Assembly (NCBI GenBank): GCA_002269645.1
Contig: NIVC01001041.1
Coordinates: forward strand, 1-25,549
Length of the DNA stretch: 25,549 nt
Direction: 5' to 3'
Source: Macrostomum lignano
Taxonomy: Eukaryota
A program made the position numbers and the translations under genes. Under the pieces are notes generated by a model. It did no database searches. It was not told where the DNA came from and saw only the letters and a list, made by a program, of their open reading frames with translations. Shown piece by piece: positions 2,146 to 21,366 of the stretch; within the stretch, counting starts at the first letter, position 1, and every line of letters begins with the position of its first letter.

Positions 2146-3281
2146 TGAAAGAGACAGGCTGGGATGAAGGGTGAGCGGCAGGGAGAGAGACAGGCTGGGA
2201 TGAAGGGTGAGGGGCAGGGAGGGAGACAGGCTGGGATGTAGGGTGAGGGGCAGGGAGGAGACAGGCTGGGATGTAGGGTGAGGGGCAGGGAGGGAGACAG
2301 GCTGGGATGTAGGGTGAGGGGCAGGGAGGGAGACAGGCTGGGATGTAGGGTGAGGGGCAGGGAGGGAGACAGGCTGGGATGTAGGGTGAGGGGCAGGGAG
2401 AGAGACATGCTGGGATGAAGGGTGAGGGGCAGGGAGGGAGACAGGCTGGGATGTAGGGTGAGGGGCAGGGAGGGAGACAGGCTGGGATGTAGGGTGAGGG
2501 CAGGGAGGGAGACAGGCTGGGATGTAGGGTGAGGGGCAGGGAGAGAGACAGGCTGGGATGAAGGGTGAGGGGCAGGGAGGGAGACAGGCTGGGATGTAGG
2601 GTGAGGGGCAGGGAGAGAGACATGCTGGGATGAAGGGTGAGGGGCAGGGAGGGAGACAGGCTGGGATGTAGGGTGAGGGGCAGGGAGGGAGACAGGCTGG
2701 GATGTAGGGTGAGGGGCAGGGAGGGAGACAGGCTGGGATGTAGGGTGAGGGGCAGGGAGGGAGACAGGCTGGGATGTAGGGTGAGGGCAGGGAGAGAGAC
2801 AGGCTGGGATGAAGGGTGAGGGGCAGGGAGGGAGACAGGCTGGGATGTAGGGTGAGGGGCAGGGAGGGAGACAGGCTGGGATGTAGGGTGAGGGGCAGGA
2901 AGGGAGACAGGCTGGGATGTAGGGTGAGGGGCAGGGAGGGAGACAGGCTGGGATGTAGGGTGAGGGGCAGGGAGAGAGACAGGCTGGGATGAAGGGTGAG
3001 GGGCAGGGAGGGAGACAGGCTGGGATGTAGGGTGAGGGGCAGGAAGGGAGACAGGCTGGGATGTAGGGTGAGGGGCAGGAAGGGAGACAGGCTGGGATGT
3101 AGGGTGAGGGGCAGGGAGATACAGGCTGGGATGTAGGGTGAGGGGCAGGAAGGGAGACAGGCTGGGATGTAGGGTGAGGGGCAGGGAAGGGAGACAGGCT
3201 GGGATGTAGGGTGAGGGGCAGGAGGGAGACAGGCTGGGATGTAGGGTGAGGGCAGGCTGGGATGTAGGGTGAGGGGCAGGG
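2146..3281. repeat. 36-bp G-rich minisatellite (GGGAGGGAGACAGGCTGGGATGTAGGGTGAGGGGCA)n, array 1
   Basis: About 31 near-identical units; source of the LPAPHPTSQPVS-type ORFs. Confidence 0.98.
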
Positions 3282-5867: not shown

Positions 5868-8219
5868 TCAAACAGGAGATTCCCGTGTCTAACAGGAGAC
5901 TCCCATGTCTAACAGGAGACTCCCATGTCTAACAGGAGACTCCCATGTCTAACAGGAGACTCCCATGTCTAACAGGAGACTCCCATGTCTAACAGGAGAC
6001 TCCCATGTCTAACAGGAGACTCCCATGTCTAACAGGAGACTCCCATGTCTAACAGGAGACTCCCATGTCTAACAGGAGACTCCCATGTCTAACAGGAGAC
6101 TCCCATGTCTAACAGGAGACTCCCATGTCTAACAGGAGACTCCCATGTCTAACAGGAGACTCCCATGTCTAACAGGAGACTCCCATGTCTAACAGGAGAC
6201 TCCCATGTCTAACAGGAGACTCCCATGTCTAACAGGAGACTCCCATGTCTAACAGGAGACTCCCATGTCTAACAGGAGACTCCCATGTCTAGCAGGAGAC
6301 TCCTGATCCCATGTCTAACAGGAGACTGCCATGTCTAACAGGAGACTGCCATGTCTAACAGGAGACTCCCATGTCTAACAAGAGACTCCCATGTCTAACA
6401 GGAGACTCCCATGTCTAACAGGAGACTCCCATGTCTAACAGGAGACTCCCATGTCTAACAGGAGACTCCCATGTCTAACAGGAGACTCCCATGTCTAACA
6501 GGAGACTCCCATGTCTAACAGGAGACTCCCATGTCTAACAGGAGACTCCCATGTCTAACAGGAGACTCCCATGTCTAACAGGAGACTCTCATGTCTAACA
6601 GGAGACTGCCATGTCTAACAGGAGACTCCCATGTCTAACAGGAGACTCCCATGTCTAACAGGAGACTCCCATGTCTAACAGGAGACTCCCATGTCTAACA
6701 GGAGACTCCCATGTCTAACAGGAGACTCCCATGTCTAACAGGAGACTCCCATGTCTAAAGGAGACTCCCATGTCTAACAGGAGACTCCCATGTCTAACAG
6801 GAGACTGCCATGTCTAACAGGAGACTCCCATGTCTAACAGGAGACTCCCATGTCTAACAGGAGACTCCCATGTCTAACAGGAGACTCCCATGTCTAACAG
6901 GAGACTCCCATGTCTAACAGGAGACTCCCATGTCTAACAGGAGACTCCCATGTCTAACAGGAGACTCCCATGTCTAACAGGAGACTCCCATGTCTAACAG
7001 GAGACTCCCATGTCTAACAGGAGACTCCCATGTCTAACAGGAGACTCCCATGTCTAACAGGAGACTCCCATGTCTAACAGGAGACTCCCATGTCTAGCAG
7101 GAGACTCCTGATCCCATGTCTAACAGGAGACTGCCATGTCTAACAGGAGACTGCCATGTCTAACAGGAGACTCCCATGTCTAACAGAGACTCCCATGTCT
7201 AACAGGAGACTCCCATGTCTAACAGGAGACTCCCATGTCTAACAGGAGACTCCCATGTCTAACAGGAGACTCCCATGTCTAACAGGAGACTCCCATGTCT
7301 AACAGGAGACTCCCATGTCTAACAGGAGACTCCCATGTCTAACAGGAGACTCCCATGTCTAACAGGAGACTCCCATGTCTAACAGGAGACTCTCATGTCT
7401 AACAGGAGACTGCCATGTCTAACAGGAGACTCCCATGTCTAACAGGAGACTCCCATGTCTAACAGGAGACTCCCATGTCTAACAGGAGACTCCCATGTCT
7501 AACAGGAGACTCCCATGTCTAACAGGAGACTCCCATGTCTAACAGGAGACTCCCATGTCTAAAGGAGACTCCCATGTCTAACAGGAGACTCCCATGTCTA
7601 ACAGGAGACTGCCATGTCTAACAGGAGACTCCCATGTCTAACAGGAGACTCCCATGTCTAACAGGAGACTCCCATGTCTAACAGGAGACTCCCATGTCTA
7701 ACAGGAGACTCCCATGTCTAACAGGAGACTGCCATGTCTAACAGGAGACTCCCATGTCTAACAGGCGACTCCCATGTCTAACAGGAGACTCCCATGTCTA
7801 ACAGGAGACTCCCATGTCTAACAGGAGACTCCCATGTCTAACAGGAGACTCCCATGTCTAACAGGAGACTCCCATGTCTAACAGGAGACTCCCATGTCTA
7901 ACAGGAGACTCCCATGTCTAACAGGAGACTCCCATGTCTAACAGGAGACTCCCATGTCTAACAGGAGACTCCCATGTCTAACAGGAGACTGCCATGTCTA
8001 ACAGGAGACTCCCATGTCTAACAGGAGACTGCCATGTCTAACAGGAGACTCCCATGTCTAACAGGAGACTGCCATGTCTAACAGGAGACTCCCATGTCTA
8101 ACAGGAGACTCCCATGTCTAACAGGAGACTCCCATGTCTAACAGGAGACTCCCATGTCTAACAGGAGACTCCCATGTCTAACAGGAGACTCCCATGTCTA
8201 ACAGGACACCATGTCTAAC
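5868..8219. repeat. 20-bp minisatellite A (AACAGGAGACTCCCATGTCT)n
   Basis: About 117 highly homogeneous units; internal ~805-bp duplicated variant pattern. Confidence 0.99.
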
Positions 8220-8889: not shown

Positions 8890-9536
8890 GGACACAGCGG
8901 GTCACGGCAAGTCAGGACACAGCGGGTCACGGCAAGTCAGGACACAGCGGGTCACGGCAAGTCAGGACACAGCGGGTCACGGCAAGTCAGGACACAGCGG
9001 GTCACGGCAAGTCAGGACACAGCGGGTCACGGCAAGTCAGGACACAGCGGGTCACGGCAAGTCAGGACACAGCGGGTCACGGCAAGTCAGGACACAGCGG
9101 GTCACGGCAAGTCAGGACACAGCGGGTCACGGCAAGTCAGGACACAGCGGGTCACGGCAAGTCAGGACACAGCGGGTCACGGCAAGTCAGGACACAGCGG
9201 GTCACGGCAAGTCAGGACACAGCGGGTCACGGCAAGTCAGGACACAGCGGGTCACGGCAAGTCAGGACACAGCGGGTCACGGCAAGTCAGGACACAGCGG
9301 GTCACGGCAAGTCAGGACACAGCGGGTCACGGCAAGTCAGGACACAGCGGGTCACGGCAAGTCAGGACACAGCGGGTCACGGCAAGTCAGAACACAGCGG
9401 GTCACGCCAAGTCAGGACACAGCGGGTCACGGCAAGTCAGGACACAGCGGGTCACGGCAAGTCAGGACACAGCGGGTCACGGCAAGTCAGGACACAGCGG
9501 GTCACGGCAAGTCAGGACACAGCGGGTCACGGCAAG
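8890..9536. repeat. 25-bp minisatellite (GACACAGCGGGTCACGGCAAGTCAG)n
   Basis: About 26 units; only two substitutions visible (9391, 9407). Confidence 0.99.
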
Positions 9537-10551: not shown

Positions 10552-11037
10552 TCAGGATGAGGCACTCAGGAAGCTGTGCCGCAGCAGCTCCGCGGTGTCC
10601 GCTCGCTTCCTCGGGTCATAGTCTACGCACCTGAGGTAGAAGTCCTTCAGGCCGGCTGAGAACCCGTCCGCAATCCGAGGCATCTTCTGCTTTCTAAACC
10701 GCAGAATGCCAATATTTTCAATTGGCTGGTCTCCATCAGGAGGCTGCATGGCCGTCAGCTCATACACGGTGCAGCCGAAGGCCCACACGTCGGTCTTGGC
10801 TGAGTACAGAAGTGATTTCAATTTTGTGTCGAACAGCTCCGGAGCCATGAAGTACATGGTACCTTTTGGTCCGAAGCCTGTGCTAAGACCGCAGGTCTTC
10901 TCAATCTCCTTGGCCAGACCGAAGTCGATCAGCTTGATGACGCCCTCGTTGGTGAGCATAATATTGGAGCTCTTAATGTCACGGTGCAAGATAGCGCCCT
11001 CCGGCTGGCAGTGCAGAAAGTTCAGGCCTGAGCAGAT
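10552..11037 (-). CDS. ANK-kinase gene, last exon: kinase C-lobe (STE11/MAP3K-like Ser/Thr kinase)
   Basis: [43 protein letters not shown], then TGA at 10554-10552; acceptor CTGCAG| at 11038, phase 0. Confidence 0.93.
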
Positions 11038-11085
11038 CTGCAGGAGCAGTTTTGAGCAGTCATGAGACCCCATACCTGCTCCCAC

Positions 11086-11353
11086 CCACACTGATCCCAC
11101 ACTAATCCCACACTGATCCCACACTGATCCCACACTGAACCCACAATGATCCCACACTGATCCCACAATGATCCCACACTGAACCCACAATGATCCCACA
11201 CTGATCCCACACTGATCCCACACTGATCCCACACTGATCCCACACTGATCCCACACTGATCCCACACTGATCCCACACTGATCCCACACAGATCCCACGC
11301 TGATCCCACACTGATCCCACACTAATCCCACACTGATCCTACACTGATCCCAC
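11086..11353. repeat. 11-bp minisatellite (CACTGATCCCA)n in intron 3 of the ANK-kinase gene
   Basis: About 24 units between donor CAG|GTGCGT (11389) and acceptor (11038). Confidence 0.97.
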
Positions 11354-11389
11354 CCATGCCAGGCAATGCCAGAGAACTCAGACACGCAC

Positions 11390-11774
11390 CTGTCTGGAGA
11401 AGTCCCTGACCCCGGACTCCTTGAACGGCTTTTTTTGACGCTGCATCAGCTCAAAGAGGCTGTGACCCGAGACCAGCTCGGTGAAGATGTACAGCCCATC
11501 CGACTTCTGCTCGCACTTGAGGAACTGCAGGATGTTGGGATGCGAGAGTCGCTTGAGGATCTCAACTCCCCGCTTCTCCATCTCGACGGCTCTCTGCAGC
11601 TTCCCCGATTGGCCGGTGCCGCTCAGGGGCAGCACCTTGACAGCCACCGTCTGGTTGCGGTCTGTGAGGGCCTTGTACACCTCACCGAATCCGCCACGGC
11701 CGATGAGCTGCTTCTTGTCGTCCTGCAGAATGAAGTCCCAGTCGGTGAAGCTGGGGTCCAGCTGCTTCTTGGCG
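11390..11774 (-). CDS. ANK-kinase gene exon 3: kinase N-lobe
   Basis: [67 protein letters not shown]; acceptor TTCATTTCATGTTTCAG| (phase 2), donor |GTGCGT (phase 0); 385 nt fits both phases. Confidence 0.92.
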
Positions 11775-11844
11775 CTGAAACATGAAATGAAGGAATTGAT
11801 GAATTTTGTGTTGCTTGGGGCTTTCTGAGTACTTTGGAGTCACT

Positions 11845-12586
11845 CAGCCTTCTGCGTCACTACTCTTATGCGTCACCAGCCTTCTGCGTCAACCACCCTT
11901 CTGCGTCACCACCCTTCTGCGTCACCACCCTTCTGCGTCACCACCCTTCTGCGTCACCACCCTTCTGCGTCACCACCCTTCTGCGTCACCACCCTTCTGC
12001 GTCACTACTCTAATGCGTCACCATCCTTATGCGTCACCACCCTTCTGCGTCACCAGCCTTCTGCGTCAACCACCCTTCTGCGTCACCACCCTTCTGCGTC
12101 ACCAACCTTCTGCGTCACCAGCCTTCTGCGTCACCACCCTTCTGCGTCACCACCCTTCTGCGTCACCACCCTTCTGCGTCACCACCCTTCTGCGTCACAA
12201 CCCTTCTGCGTCACCACCCTTCTGCGTCACCACCCTTCTGCGTCACCACCCTTCTGCGTCACCACCCTTCTGCGCACCACCCTTCTGCGTCACCACCCTT
12301 CTGCGTCACCACCCTTCTGCGTCACCACCCTTCTGCGTCACCACCCTTCTGCGTCACCACCCTTCTGCGTCACCACCCTTCTGCGTCACCACCCTTCTGC
12401 GTCACCACCCTTCTGCGTCACCACCCTTCTGCGTCACCACCCTTCTGCGTCACCACCCTTCTGCGTCACCACCCTTCTGCGTCACCACCCTTCTGCGTCA
12501 CCACCCTTCTGCGTCACAACCCTTCTGCGTCACCACCCTTCTGCGTCACCACCCTTCTGCGTCACCACCCTTCTGCGTCACCACCC
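11845..12586. repeat. 16-bp minisatellite (CCACCCTTCTGCGTCA)n in intron 2 of the ANK-kinase gene
   Basis: About 46 units. Confidence 0.97.
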
Positions 12587-12701
12587 TTTTGTCATGAGCA
12601 TCCTCGGGCGCCGTGAAGAGCCAGGTGCCTTTTGGCTGGTTGCCTGCGCTCAGACTGCAGGTTCTGATGAGTTCACTAACTGTCGCCTCATCATTTCTCA
12701 C

Positions 12702-12788
12702 CGAGTCTTTTCAGGCAGTCCGACCGGAGTCGGCCCAGGCGGCTGGACGCTCTGTCGAGCTCGTGGGCGGGGACGCGGAGCTGCAGCG
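12702..12788 (-). CDS. ANK-kinase gene exon 2: Pro/Arg-rich linker (AAAPRPRPRARQSVQPPGPTPVGLPEKTR)
   Basis: Acceptor CTCTTCCTACAG|, donor |GTGAGA; 87 nt, phase 2 at both ends, matching the neighbouring exons; GC-rich and stop-free. Confidence 0.65.
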
Positions 12789-13121
12789 CTGTAGGAAGAG
12801 TTTTACGAGTGAGCCGTTAAAAATGTCTGGGTCGCCAAGACGGCACTTAAACTCTGCTAATGCTTCGTGTATAAAAAGCCCCTGCAGATTGAGCTTTGGG
12901 TGGCGCTATATGGACATTGGGGGCGCGATCGGGAGATTGCGGCGCCACGAAGAGATTGGAGGCTCTCAAATCATTCAAGTGCCAATATTTTGAACATCAC
13001 ACCAAGTACATTCCTACTAAAATCGGAGAGTTTGAAACTTCGGAGAGTTTGATGGCACTTGCACTCGCTGATGCTTTGTGTTTAAAAACTGCAGATTGAG
13101 CTGTGGGTGGGGGTTGTGGGC

Positions 13122-13350
13122 CCATAGGGAGGTTGGAGGCGCCATGGGGAGATTGGAGACGCCGTTGGGAGGTTGGAGGCGCCATGAAGAGGTTTAAGGC
13201 GCCATGGGGAGGTTGGGGGCGCCATGGGGAGGTTGGAGGCGCCATGAGGAGGTTGGAGGCGCCATGGGGAGGTTGGGGGCGCCATGGGGAGGTTGGGGGC
13301 GCCATGGGGAGGTTGGAGGCGCCATGTAGAGGTTGGGGGCGCCATGAGGA
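13122..13350. repeat. 21-bp minisatellite (GGAGGTTGGAGGCGCCATGGG)n in intron 1 of the ANK-kinase gene
   Basis: About 11 units. Confidence 0.95.
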
Positions 13351-13505
13351 GCTGTACTGACAGATTCATGACACCCTCGCTTGACTGCGGCGCTGCTGAG
13401 AATTTCAGGGCGCCGATCATCAAAGCAATGAATTTCAATGAATTTTCGCCAAAAAACATTTTCAGAATTTTCAGTGTCAGGCAGCAGCTCTCAGTCAGGA
13501 CTCAC

Positions 13506-14857
13506 CCAGCTGAGGCGGCAGTCGGCGCTGAGCTGCCAGCGGGAGGCCGAGAGGCTTCGAGCTGCCGCTGCGTGGAGGAAATCCAGGCCCGCTTTGCTGA
13601 CTGGTCTCTAAAGTAGCAATAACTCTCAACATAATCAGCCGGTGTTTTGCCCTCGTTGTTCTTCAAGCCGAGCATTTCGGCTCCGATTTGGTCAAAAATG
13701 AACTGAAGAGAGTCGACTGGCTGCCACTGAGCGGCCAAATGGACGGCCGTGTCACCTCTAGAGTCAGGAACTGTGAGACAGTCGCTGCCGAGCTCCTTCA
13801 CCAGCCACTCCAGATTTGAATTGTCAGACTTCTTAGCAGCAAAGTGAAATGCTGTTCTATCATCATCTCCCTTCAGCCGAAAGCAGTCAGTTCCGATCTG
13901 TCTCTTGATCCACTCCAGCGACTCGATGCTCTGATGCTGAGCGGCCAAATGGACGGCCGTGTCACCTCTAGAGTCAGGAACTGTGAGACAGTCGCTGCCG
14001 AGCTCCTTCACCAGCCACTTCAGCATTGAATTGTCAGACTTCTGAGCAGCAATGTGAAATGCCGTTCTATCACCATCTCCCTTCAGCCGAAAGCAGTCAG
14101 TTCCGATCTGTCTCTTGATCCACTCCAGCGACTCGATGCCCTGATGCTCAGCGGCCAAATGGACGGCCTTGTTCCCGTATTTGTAAGGAACTGTGAGACA
14201 GTCGCTGCCGAGCTCTTTCACCAGCCACTTCAGATTTGAATTGTCAGACTTCACAGCAGCAAAGTGAAATGCTGTTGTATCACATTCTCCCTTCAGCCGA
14301 AAGCAGTCAGTTCCGATCTGTCTCTTGATCCACTCCAGCGACTCGATGCCCTGATGCTGAGCGGCCAAATGGACGCCCGTGGTACCGTCTTCGTCAGGAA
14401 CTGTGAGACAGTCGCTGCCGAGCTCCTTCACCAGCCACTTCAGACAAGAGTTGCTTTTTCTGTTCATAGCGGCAAAGTGAGCGACTGTCTCTCCATTTTT
14501 AGCGGCAATTCTCAAGCAGCCTCTGCCTCCCTTCTCTTTAACCAGCTCCATCCAAGATTCGTCCTGATGCTGGGCAGCCAAGTGCACTGGAGTCTGCCCT
14601 CTACCATTTCCACGTGTCAGACAGCCGGTTCCGAATCTGTCAATCAGCAGCTCCAGGCACGACGAGCTCACCGGCTTGCAAGCCACGTGTTGGGCCAGCG
14701 GCATTTTGTGAAGCTCTTCAAAGGGATAGTCTTGCTTGTCGAACCCGCCCACCTCCAGCTCGATGTTGCTGCCGACCTCACCGCACAGTCGCTGCAGCTC
14801 CTCGCTGTCTCCAGCCTCCAGCGCCGCTCTCAGCTTCCGCTTCATCTCTGTTGCCAT
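13506..14857 (-). CDS. ANK-kinase gene exon 1: ankyrin-repeat array
   Basis: 450 codons with repeated G-x-T-A/P-x-H-x-A-A motifs; start context GCCATGG with an in-frame upstream TAG at 14890-14888; perfect donor GG|GTGAGT at 13505 (phase 2). Confidence 0.95.
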
Positions 14858-15470: not shown

Positions 15471-15978
15471 TCAGTATCTAACAGGTGACGTCAGTATCTA
15501 ACAGGTGACATCAGTGTCTAACATGTCACTCTAGTATCTAACAGGTGACGTCAGTATCTAACAGGTGACACCAGTATCTAACAGGTGACATCAGTATCTA
15601 ACAGGTGACATCAGTATCAAAAAGGTGACATCAGTATCTAACAGGTGACATCGATATCTAACAGGTGACATAAGTGTCTCACAGCTGACATCAGTATCTA
15701 ATACGTGACTTCTTTATCTAACAGGTGACGTCAGTATCTAACAGGTGACGTCAGTATCTAACAGGTGACATCAGTATCATACAAGTGACATCAGTATCTA
15801 ACAGGCGATATCGGTATCAAACACGTGACACCATTATCTAACAGGTGACATCAGTATCTAACAGGTGACATCAGTATCATACAAGTGACATCAGTATCTA
15901 ACAGGCGATATCGGTATCAAACACGTGACACCATTATCTAACAGGTGACATCAGTATCTAACAGGTGACATCAGTATC
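15471..15978. repeat. 20-bp minisatellite B (TCAGTATCTAACAGGTGACA)n, segment 1
   Basis: About 25 moderately diverged units; the same unit resumes at 17509 and 17931. Confidence 0.95.
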
Positions 15979-19690: not shown

Positions 19691-20207
19691 CACCTCATCA
19701 ATGGCGCTTTGTGCTCAAATGCAGTTTATTTATAAATTTATTAATAATTTTGCATTTTGTACTCACGGTTTATTTTGCTAATCTTTATACACAGTTCAGG
19801 TGTGCATTTTGTAATCCACCTTTGATAATCTTTGGATTTATTTATCCGGTGCAACAGACTGACCCTGCTTCTACTCGCCCCGACCCTAGCCATCCAAGCA
19901 GCTCCAGACCAGCCGAGCTCAATGCCTAGAGGACAATGGCGAAGCTGAGGTTTAAGGGCCGAGCCGGCAGCCTGCGAACGCGTGTCAAAAGAAGACTCGC
20001 TGCAAATGCTTTTTTAGGAGGGGGGGGGGTTGATGGCTGCCTAAAAGCGGCACAGAGACAAGATGCGTGAGCGCCAACCCTGCCCCGCTCAAACCATTCA
20101 CTGCTTTGCATTGCGCTTGTGCTCTCAGCTAAAATTTACTGCCTTTGATATTCGGCACTTCGTGTTTTCAGATGCGAGCCTCCCACTCATATTGGGCGTT
20201 TAGAATT

Positions 20208-21366
20208 AGGGAGAGGGGCAGGGAGAGACAGGCTGGGATGTAGGGTGAGGGGCAGGGAGAGACAGGCTCGGATGTAGGGTGAGGGGCAGGGAGAGAAAGG
20301 CTGGGATGTAGGGTGAGGGGCAGGGAGAGAGACAGGCTGGGATGTAGGGTGAGGGGCACGGAGAGAGAAAGGCTGGGATGTAGGGTGAGGGGCAGGGAGA
20401 GAGACAGGCTGGGATGTAGGGTGAGGGGCAGGGAGAGAGACAGGCTGGGATGTAGGGTGAGGGGCAGGGAGAGAGACAGGCTGGGATGTAGGGTGAGGGG
20501 CAGGGAGAGAGACAGGCTGGGATGTAGGGTGAGGGGCAGGGAGAGAGACAGGCTGGGATGTAGGGTGAGGGGCAGGGAGAGAGACAGGCTGGGATGTAGG
20601 GTGAGGGGCAGGGAGAGAGAAAGGCTGGGATGTAGGGTGAGGGGCAGGGAGAGAGAAAGGCTGGGATGTAGGGTGAGAAGCAGGGAGGGAGACAGGCTGG
20701 GATGTAGGGTGAGGGGCAGGGAGAGAGACAGGCTGGGATGTAGGGTGAGGGGCAGGGAGAGAGACAGGCTGGGATGTAGGGTGAGGGGCAGGGAGAGAGA
20801 CAGGCTGGGATGTAGGGTGAGGGACAAGAAGAGATAGGCTGGGATGTAGGGTGAGAAGCAGGGAGGGAGAAAGGCTGGGATGTAGGGTGAGGGGCAGGGA
20901 GAGAGACAGGCTGGGATGTAGGGTGAGGGGCAGGGAGAGAGAAAGGCTGGGATGTAGGGTGAGGGGCAGGGAGAGAGAAAGGCTGGGATGTAGGGTGAGA
21001 AGCAAGGAGAGAGACAGGCTGGGATGTAGGGTGAGGGGCAGGGAGAGAGACAGGCTGGGATGTAGGGTGAGGGGCAGGGAGAGAGACAGGCTGGGATGTA
21101 GGGTGAGAGGCAGGGAGGGAGACAGGCTGGGATGTAGGGTGAGGGGCAGGGAGAGAGACAGGCTGGGATGTAGGGTGAGGGGCAGGGAGAGAGACAGGCT
21201 GGGATGTAGGGTGAGGGCAGGGAGAGAGAAAGGCTGGGATGTAGGGTGAGGGGCAGGGAGAGAGAAAGGCTGGGATGTAGGGTGAGGGGCAGGGAGAGAG
21301 ACAGGCTGGGATGTAGGGTGAGGGGCAGGGAGAGAGACAGGCTGAGATGTAGGGTGAGAGGCAGGG
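20208..21366. repeat. 36-bp G-rich minisatellite, array 2 (same family as 2146-3281)
   Basis: About 32 units, dominant variant GGGAGAGAGA. Confidence 0.98.

Follow-up and report, generated by a model that had tools for sequence, protein, structure and literature searches.

A constant scaffold that displays a hypervariable surface is a hallmark of recognition repertoires, among them fungal NOD-like receptors (NLRs), the leucine-rich repeats of plant NLRs, and the variable lymphocyte receptors (VLRs) of lampreys. In designed ankyrin repeat proteins (DARPins), Binz et al. 2003 reportedly randomised repeat positions 2, 3, 5, 13, 14, and 33. The positions randomised in DARPins are on the concave, binding side of the molecule (PMC8229355). 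Fungal NLRs, exemplified by HNWD/het-e of Podospora, carry ANK, TPR, or WD repeats with high internal conservation, repeat-number polymorphism, and concerted evolution (Dyrka et al. 2014, PMC4986451). Positive selection in these repeats falls on concave-face positions, the sensor and effector domains, including Pkinase, are combinatorially assorted, and repeats so conserved occur in only 0.8% of metazoan ANK/TPR/WD proteins (PMC4986451). A third system, the ANK-caspases, is described as confined to parasitic flatworms, with one annelid ANK-caspase as the exception, in an account that does not discuss hypervariability (PMC11463336). The locus compared with them here lies in the flatworm Macrostomum lignano, on a stretch of 25,549 nucleotides (assembly GCA_002269645.1, contig NIVC01001041.1, positions 1 to 25,549, at 100% identity; hereafter the window), which holds a gene whose product joins an ankyrin array built of 210-bp units to a protein kinase.

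The framework of this ankyrin array is under purifying selection, and in its hairpins and first helices amino acid replacement runs faster than neutral throughout the solenoid. The gene belongs to a family of ankyrin proteins with STE11/MAP3K-like kinases that probably act as cytosolic binders of variable specificity, with a constant scaffold and with hairpins that are both selected and shuffled.

Tandem Repeats Finder places the array at 13727-14444 (period 210, 3.4 copies, 91% matches), and a direct-repeat scan of the whole window gave nothing beyond this result. The 23-mer GTGAGACAGTCGCTGCCGAGCTC has four exact plus-strand copies, starting at 13773, 13983, 14193, and 14403, at a spacing of exactly 210 bp and one base from the positions estimated in a first-pass annotation of the sequence; 100 shuffles gave no match. 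The 210-bp building block proposed in that annotation consists of two 35-residue repeats, one of type A and one of type B, and the two types alternate along the array. The units and their hypervariable codons are as follows.

13727..14444, minus strand: array, from Tandem Repeats Finder, the 23-mer, and the unit alignment
14396-14443, minus strand: tail of repeat B0 in the array
14186-14395, minus strand: unit 1, A1 (DEDGTTG) and B1 (GECDT)
13976-14185, minus strand: unit 2, A2 (YKYGNKA) and B2 (GDGDR)
13766-13975, minus strand: unit 3, A3 (DSRGDTA) and B3 (GDDDR)
13727-13765, minus strand: first 13 codons of A-last
14387..14392, minus strand: hypervariable codons at positions 2-3 of A1 (E, D), GAA GAC (gtcttc on the plus strand), from the codon table
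14177-14182 in A2 (K, Y), 13967-13972 in A3 (S, R), and 13757-13762 in A-last (S, R), minus strand: equivalents of positions 2-3 in the A repeats
14282-14287 in B1 (E, C), 14072-14077 in B2 (D, G), and 13862-13867 in B3 (D, D), minus strand: equivalents of positions 2-3 in the B repeats
14357..14359, minus strand: hypervariable codon at position 13 of A1 (Q), in the last turn of helix 1
14147-14149 in A2 (E), 13937-13939 in A3 (Q), 14252-14254 in B1 (V), 14042-14044 in B2 (Q), and 13832-13834 in B3 (K), minus strand: equivalents of position 13

All of the peptides singled out in the first-pass annotation are present in the 451-residue minus-strand translation (WLVKELGSDCLTVP and ESLEWIKRQIGTDCFRLKG; DEDGTTG/YKYGNKA/DSRGDTA/DSRGDTA; ECDT/DGDR/DDDR; AAVK/AAQK/AAKK; QHQ/EHQ/QHQ/QWQ), and its assignment of the array to the ankyrin fold was confirmed by family matches and structure prediction. 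In Pfam, the open reading frame (ORF) of the array matches Ank_2 (E=7.5e-36), Ank_4 (5.6e-31), and Ank (3.5e-24), all of which pass the curated cut-offs. The AlphaFold2 model of residues 1-421 is a regular solenoid (predicted local distance difference test, pLDDT, 92.6; predicted template modelling score, pTM, 0.84), whose top Foldseek matches are AnkB (ankyrin-B), Espin, NOMPC, and ankyrin-R. Its DSSP secondary structure defines a repeat of 35 residues, not 33, with helix 1 at positions 7-14, helix 2 at positions 17-27, and an extra short helix at positions 29-33. Each repeat bears T-A-V-H or T-A-F-H, a TPLH-type motif, at positions 6-9. The A consensus reads D-x-x-G-x-T-A-V-H-L-A-A-x-H-Q-G-I-E-S-L-E-W-I-K-R-Q-I-G-T-D-C-F-R-L-K and the B consensus G-x-x-D-x-T-A-F-H-F-A-A-x-K-S-D-N-S-N-L-K-W-L-V-K-E-L-G-S-D-C-L-T-V-P. 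The array is encoded by exon 1 of the gene, which runs from an N-terminal cap through 10 repeats (R1, R2, B0, A1, B1, A2, B2, A3, B3, A-last) and a degenerate C-cap repeat to the start of a linker.

The units of the window gene are 81-86% identical in amino acid sequence and about 91% identical in nucleotides, and their differences are not spread at random. The scaffold is nearly identical even at synonymous sites, as had been noted at first pass: codons 17-35 of the A repeats (IESLEWIKRQIGTDCFRLK) are the same to the nucleotide in all three full units, and WLVKELGSDCLTVP shows one synonymous difference among them. The same units have 26 variable nucleotide columns, 15 of which fall within the 30 nucleotides of positions 2, 3, 5, 13, and 14 in both repeats (binomial P=3e-7), and those 10 DARPin-type codons account for 8 of the 15 codons in the window gene that vary in amino acid (hypergeometric P=2.5e-5). 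The proportion of nonsynonymous differences (pN) is 0.36-0.53 at these positions and 0.02-0.05 in the other 60 codons, and the overall proportion of synonymous differences (pS) is 0.036-0.065. Several hypervariable codons differ at all three nucleotides next to codons that are identical. The model puts positions 2-5 in the loop that precedes helix 1 and positions 13-14 at the final turn of that helix; by canonical ankyrin geometry, this secondary structure would place the variable positions on the concave binding surface.

The pattern was followed in the DNA of six paralogous loci (L002-L007, the window gene being L001), which have the exon-1 design and splice donor of the window gene and two or three internal units. 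Among 17 A and 17 B internal repeats, pN reaches 0.5-0.67 at positions 2 and 3 of both types and at position 13 of the A type (0.28 in the B type), against a pS of about 0.10 and a pN of 0.04-0.06 at the remaining positions. Site models were run in an own GY94 codon implementation with F3x4 frequencies and a fixed neighbour-joining tree. Twice the gain in log-likelihood of M2a over M1a (2ΔlnL) is 33.8 for the A repeats, with omega2 at 8.4, and 20.7 for the B repeats, with omega2 at 5.8; in both repeat types, positions 2, 3, and 13 have a P(omega>1) of at least 0.95 and a ratio of nonsynonymous to synonymous rates (dN/dS) well above 1. The non-duplicated parts of exon 1 (211 aligned codons from seven paralogues) give 2ΔlnL=66.6 and omega2=9.2 for 8% of sites. 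M2a flags positions 2-3 in each of R1, B0, and A-last, position 14 in A-last, and positions 3 and 5 in the degenerate C-cap repeat, along with three codons off the hairpin positions, two just N-terminal of R1 and one in the C-cap/linker region. Because non-duplicated repeats are flagged too, the signal of selection forms a stripe along the whole solenoid, beyond the duplicated units. Positions 1, 7, 10, 16, and 21 also vary now and then. The M0 omega is 0.86-1.1 for the ankyrin sets, as against 0.28 for a kinase control.

The closest paralogue, L008 (NIVC01000558.1), supplies a neutral yardstick. It was found by kinase search and is annotated as a 357-residue kinase only (Mlig009647g1). An uninterrupted 592-residue ankyrin exon at 6356-8131, with five internal units and the same donor site, lies upstream of its kinase. 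Because this complete ankyrin exon is directly upstream, the Mlig009647g1 gene model is truncated. The identity of L008 to the window gene, region by region, is as follows.

Upstream flank: 97.3%
Downstream flank: 97.9%
Intron 1: 97.4%
Intron 2: 96.6%
Exon 2: 100%
Exon 3: 99.2%
Exon 4: 100%
Ankyrin exon: 92-94%

The two kinases show no amino acid change. In the non-duplicated ankyrin parts of the pair, pS is 0.034-0.042, near the non-coding rate, and pN is 0.060-0.113. Pooled pN is 0.079, which is higher than pooled pS (0.037; P=0.03), than the mismatch rate of non-coding DNA (0.019; P=6e-11), and than the rate in the kinase exons (3/958; P=1e-16). Most of the amino acid changes are in hairpins, namely those of R2, B0, A-last, and the C-cap. 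Since pS is not raised, gene-conversion import of diverged tracts cannot explain this pair, while an excess of amino acid replacement can. The control presents a sensor exon that evolves several times faster than its own introns.

Diversifying selection, as suggested in the first-pass annotation, is thus supported by the pairwise pN/pS comparisons, the site models (omega of about 6-9), and the L008 control. The accompanying proposal that change falls on the DARPin positions holds strongly for positions 2, 3, and 13, moderately for position 5, and less clearly for position 14 (3-5/6), and it fails for position 33.

Several observations weigh against selection on a DARPin-like surface. The likelihood-ratio test is also significant for the kinase control (2ΔlnL=21), owing to two codons (0.7% of sites) with multi-nucleotide changes, and recombination among repeats breaks the tree assumption of the site models. 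Of the DARPin positions, 33 does not vary at all and 14 is flagged in A-last only. A second copy of the gene on the same contig, described below, is frameshifted in unit 1, so some family members may be decaying or some arrays imperfectly assembled. Because the kinase control gave so high a value, the likelihood-ratio test is not trustworthy alone, and the case rests instead on the proportion of sites, on pairwise counts, and on the introns as a control.

These same measures bear on the view that nothing adaptive is taking place, and that unconstrained surface positions change by neutral drift around a framework that concerted evolution and purifying selection preserve. Positions 2, 3, 5, 13, and 14 are generally the least conserved of ankyrin repeats, homogenisation of the scaffold is evident, and the likelihood-ratio test can be inflated by recombination or multi-nucleotide changes, as the kinase control showed. 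Neutral sites, however, cannot outpace synonymous sites and introns, and here pN is 0.36-0.67 against a pS of 0.04-0.10 and a non-coding divergence of about 0.02 from L008. Many codons also differ at two or three nucleotides beside identical codons, and conversion tracts that homogenise the framework would erase neutral differences 3-10 nucleotides away as well. Neutral drift is very unlikely to account for the pattern.

The units themselves turn over. Their internal number is three in the window gene and two, three, or five among the loci, L008 having five. The first-pass annotation had called the duplications recent, which stands in part: unit number has changed recently (three against five in L008, at a mismatch of about 2%), but the scaffolds of its units have diverged about as much as those of units in different paralogues. 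For the scaffold alone, nucleotide divergence is 3.8-4.0% between units of one gene and 4.5-5.6% between units of different genes, and it ranges over 2.4-6% among the window gene's own units. The closeness of divergence within genes to that between genes points to ongoing exchange across the family, and a private, very recent duplication of units is ruled out as the whole story.

Gene conversion, the other process named at first pass, or a related shuffling does occur, because hairpin cassettes with identical codons recur across loci: DSRGDTA is found twice in L001, twice in L002, and in L003, GDDDRTA in L001 and L003, and TKCDRTA in L004 and L006. Two units of L002 have identical scaffolds and an identical B hairpin with different A hairpins (DQCDDTA and DSRGDTA). 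Such sharing could mean that conversion shuffles a limited, old set of hairpin cassettes with no selection for new variants, the high dN being imported ancient divergence, and codons that differ at several nucleotides are more readily explained by import than by stepwise mutation. Yet most hairpins are unique, the 67 repeats containing 48 different strings. Imports should also bring linked synonymous differences, yet pS between the window gene and L008 equals the non-coding rate, and the non-duplicated repeats differ in one to five adjacent codons only. Shuffling of old cassettes by itself is unlikely; to keep so many of them against homogenisation needs selection that favours diversity, at which point this explanation largely merges with that of selected and shuffled hairpins.

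The two arms of contig NIVC01001041.1, each about 25 kb long and 97-99% identical, form a palindrome in which the reverse complement of the window matches the record at about 29.0-50.8 kb. The second arm (L009, record 27120-50790) holds the inverted copy of the gene, Mlig034536g1, annotated at 562 residues and containing four internal units, the extra one combining an A3-type hairpin with a B2-type repeat. The palindrome could be a real inverted duplication or an artefact of long-read assembly. The deposited protein PAA73052.1 (P0001; 699 residues) has two internal units and lacks exactly unit 2 (70 residues, YKYGNKA...GDGDR; 13976-14185), although the genomic exon is uninterrupted. Each of the 49 equivalent placements of the missing 210 nucleotides (49/49) lacks GT..AG, GC..AG, or AT..AC ends, so the missing unit is not a normal intron. 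The deposited model probably follows an allele or transcript with one unit fewer, or else a collapsed transcript assembly. Whether they reflect alleles, inverted duplication, or noise of assembly and annotation, the differences in unit number all fit an array prone to unequal recombination.

It is highly improbable that the array, its unit number, or its differences are products of long-read mis-assembly, or that the gene is a decaying pseudogene. The palindrome arms do differ in unit number (three and four) and one copy is frameshifted, the deposited protein has only two internal units, and most of the window is minisatellite. The window copy is nonetheless an uninterrupted 451-codon exon with canonical splice sites and an intact kinase, and eight other loci on different contigs share its architecture and variable positions. 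The differences are in-frame substitutions at specific codons, not indels of the long-read type, and both framework and kinase are under purifying selection.

The complete gene has four exons on the minus strand and encodes a product of 769 residues. Exons were placed by mapping PAA73052.1 (BOX15_Mlig008815g1) onto the window. The array ORF (14857..13502, minus strand) is 451 residues long, and its apparent stop is part of the splice donor GG/GTGAGT. The gene model is as follows.

13506..14857, minus strand: exon 1, 451 codons, from the ORF, the repeat register, Pfam, and the donor; the last codon is split GG/C across intron 1
12789..13505, minus strand: intron 1, 717 nucleotides, GT..AG, with a 20-bp minisatellite at 13122-13351
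12702..12788, minus strand: exon 2, a Pro/Arg-rich linker of 29 residues (AAAPRPRPRARQSVQPPGPTPVGLPEKTR)
11775..12701, minus strand: intron 2, 927 nucleotides, GT..AG, with a 16-bp minisatellite at 11839-12588
11390..11774, minus strand: exon 3, kinase N-lobe with the G-loop and lysine, from tblastn, junctions, and Pfam
11038..11389, minus strand: intron 3, 352 nucleotides, GT..AG, with an 11-bp repeat at 11085-11353
10552..11037, minus strand: exon 4, kinase C-lobe and stop codon (10552-10554)

The 769-residue product contains no hydrophobic stretch long enough for a signal peptide or a membrane span. Coupling of the array to a kinase, which the first-pass annotation had put forward, is confirmed by the exons at 12788-12702, 11774-11390, and 11037-10552. 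The whole product matches Pkinase in Pfam (E=7.4e-56), and the VAVK, HRD, DFG, and APE (MAPE) motifs are present in the alignment. Among solved structures, the nearest relatives are the STE20-type STK25/MST and MAP3K5 (E of about 5e-35), and beyond M. lignano the best matches, at 36-38% identity, are plant MAPKKKs of the STE11 type. The kinase appears to be STE11/MAP3K-like, a subfamily placed by best matches. ILK, TNNI3K, RIPK4/ANKK1, and DAPK were considered as families to which the gene might belong and were rejected, since none is found among the best 60 solved-structure matches listed, which are STE20, MAP3K, NEK, PAK, and similar kinases. With its catalytic motifs intact and its sequence conserved (dN/dS of 0.3-0.6 among paralogues; M0 omega 0.28), the kinase is apparently active. 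Two codons of exon 4 in the activation segment, N in LTNEGV and M in GTMYF, have multi-nucleotide differences among paralogues; they are the sole kinase sites in the positive-selection class, and one of them lies in the activation loop just before APE.

The sensor exon is not tied to a single effector. L002 (NIVC01002760.1) has about 90% identity with the window gene over its flanks, its ankyrin exon, and part of intron 1, while its kinase exons have no match to those of the window gene at the nucleotide level and encode a kinase of 41% amino acid identity with dS>1.2. Because so diverged a kinase stands beside an ankyrin exon of about 90% identity, L002 has an old, different kinase behind a recently shared sensor, and the comparison indicates an effector swap behind the shared exon. 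More distant M. lignano relatives, whose ankyrin part is 45% identical over about 80% of the query, carry Peptidase_C14 caspase domains. Two of these proteins, P0015 and P0016, match Peptidase_C14 in Pfam with E=9.5e-42 and 7e-16, and the window gene has its kinase in place of this domain.

The A/B unit is repeated at least five times at the caspase locus L010 (NIVC01000874.1, 5890-7254). All of its A-type amino acid changes fall at positions 3 and 5, and the B-type changes, in the 14 codons analysed, fall at positions 2, 3, 5, 10, and 13. A different frame carries the L010 array further upstream than the annotated start, a sign of either a frameshift or a gene longer than annotated. The M. 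lignano ANK-caspases appear to extend the platyhelminth ANK-caspase family to a free-living flatworm. Products of L001, L004, L005, and L008 include the exon 2 linker, and those of L003, L006, and L007 lack it. Because only some products have it, the length of the connection between sensor and kinase varies across the family.

In the databases searched, the ankyrin-kinase multigene family is confined to Macrostomum lignano. Of 51 protein matches, 40 are from this species, and the next best are generic ankyrin proteins with E of about 1e-14. Two further members, P0074 and P0075, stand together on another contig (129,768 bp); with the two copies on the contig of the window, this suggests that the family is arranged in local pairs or clusters. 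The remainder of the window is dominated by minisatellites, whose read-through accounts for nearly all of its other long ORFs, and the six ORFs free of repeats have no Pfam match. A 36-bp minisatellite (TAGGGTGAGGGGCAGGGAG...) forms two arrays in direct orientation, at 2151-3256 and 20207-21366, which flank the gene about 17 kb apart, and an array of it also lies upstream of L008. A 20-bp array at 15471-15978 and a 25-bp array at 8890-9536 are likewise common to paralogous loci. Because arrays are shared between the window and these loci, the unit of segmental duplication includes minisatellites.

These findings present a model in which unequal recombination and gene conversion, within and between paralogues, would add, delete, and shuffle 210-bp units and so keep the framework nearly identical. 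Positive diversifying selection would act in essentially every repeat on the hairpin tip (positions 2, 3, and partly 5) and the end of the inner helix (position 13 and partly 14), which together would make an unbroken band along the canonical binding surface of ankyrins. The outcome would be a germline repertoire of constant scaffolds with variable paratopes, each wired to a kinase and, in relatives, to a second type of kinase or to a caspase. Binding of a ligand in the ankyrin groove might then change kinase activity through relief of autoinhibition or through clustering, and feed a MAPK-type stress or death pathway.

By analogy with known repertoires, a role as an immune sensor, as suggested at first pass, is plausible, and a non-self or danger ligand is the favoured, if tentative, guess. 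Co-evolution with fast-evolving endogenous partners is a serious alternative to non-self sensing. In that case binding would truly diversify toward an endogenous target, such as rapidly evolving reproductive proteins under sexual conflict in this hermaphrodite, selfish elements, or the partners of a signalling scaffold that subfunctionalised after the recent genome duplication. M. lignano has very many recent in-paralogues (40,944; 10.1101/2024.02.05.578899), nothing in the sequence specifies an immune function, and members of the family reside in repeat-rich, duplicated, and even palindromic DNA. Subfunctionalisation, on the other hand, predicts neither an omega of 6-9 on one surface of each repeat nor repeated change of unit number. 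The fusion of the same sensor to caspases suits death or defence better than reproduction, although this is not decisive. An endogenous target is possible, though on the unlikely side, and a ligand of that kind would leave the family a remarkable example of kinase targeting diversified through cassettes.

The broadest form of the proposal is that M. lignano holds a germline repertoire of NOD-less, DARPin-like intracellular receptors with interchangeable effectors (two MAP3K-like kinase types and caspases), as an undescribed class of animal innate-immune or allorecognition receptor. In this form it is a speculative suggestion. If true, the system would be convergent in logic with fungal NLRs and lamprey VLRs, in a phylum for which loss of FADD and DED-caspases has been reported. 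The pattern in an animal would offer a new candidate architecture for innate receptors, in which an ankyrin scaffold without a NOD domain is fused to a MAP3K-like kinase or a caspase. According to Wudarski et al. 2017, M. lignano is said to be a laboratory model amenable to RNA interference and transgenesis, which makes the recognition hypothesis directly testable. The family would also constitute a natural data set on the ankyrin positions that tolerate or exploit diversity, including a 35-residue, two-repeat framework unused in designed libraries.

No publication was found on the M. lignano ankyrin-kinase family, its gene identifier, or its hypervariability, or on an expansion of ankyrin-kinases in Macrostomum. 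An ankyrin array and a kinase share one cytosolic polypeptide in ILK, TNNI3K, RIPK4/ANKK1, and DAPK1, and in ILK and TNNI3K the ankyrins are N-terminal. To our knowledge, these are single-copy conserved genes without hypervariable repeats. The M. lignano kinase groups, by the best matches listed, with STE20 and STE11-MAP3K kinases rather than with ILK, TNNI3K, RIPK4, or DAPK.

The nematode F-box and MATH-BTB expansions are proposed to supply intracellular adaptors for foreign proteins. For the F-box family, expansion is described together with positive selection on the substrate-binding part (PMC8120010). The family described here likewise is a lineage-specific, cytosolic expansion with a selected binding part and a conserved part that couples to the effector. 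The folds are different, however, and its diversity resides in tandem-repeat cassettes coupled to a kinase or caspase rather than to recruitment of a ubiquitin ligase.

The comparison with platyhelminth ANK-caspases, and with P0015 and P0016, rests on a homologous ankyrin domain; P0015 and P0016 share the A/B unit and the same variable positions. The difference is in the effector, which in the window gene is a kinase. With DARPins, the array shares a constant consensus framework and diversity concentrated at hairpin positions 2, 3, and, more moderately, 5 and at helix-1 positions 13 and, less clearly, 14. It departs from them in being a natural array of 35-residue repeats that have an extra helix at positions 29-33, alternate between two types, and keep position 33 constant.

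The conserved repeats of fungal NLRs are the closest known parallel to the M. lignano ankyrin-kinase family. Membership of the window gene among NLRs is ruled out by the lack of a NOD domain: neither NACHT nor NB-ARC is found in P0001, P0002, or the window ORF, for which Pfam gives ankyrin and kinase families only. The M. lignano gene is an animal gene whose sensor is N-terminal and fused directly to the effector, and its unit of duplication is a pair of 35-residue repeats instead of one 33-residue repeat. Its units, at 81-86% amino acid identity, are at the edge of the fungal criterion of at least 85% over at least 100 residues (Dyrka et al.), and where fungal NLRs show repeat-number polymorphism, the differences in unit number seen here are among paralogues, between the contig arms, and in the deposited protein. 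Despite these differences, both systems combine a near-identical framework, change in repeat number, exchange within and between members, and selection on a few hairpin and inner-helix positions, and in both a repeat sensor is fused combinatorially to different effectors.

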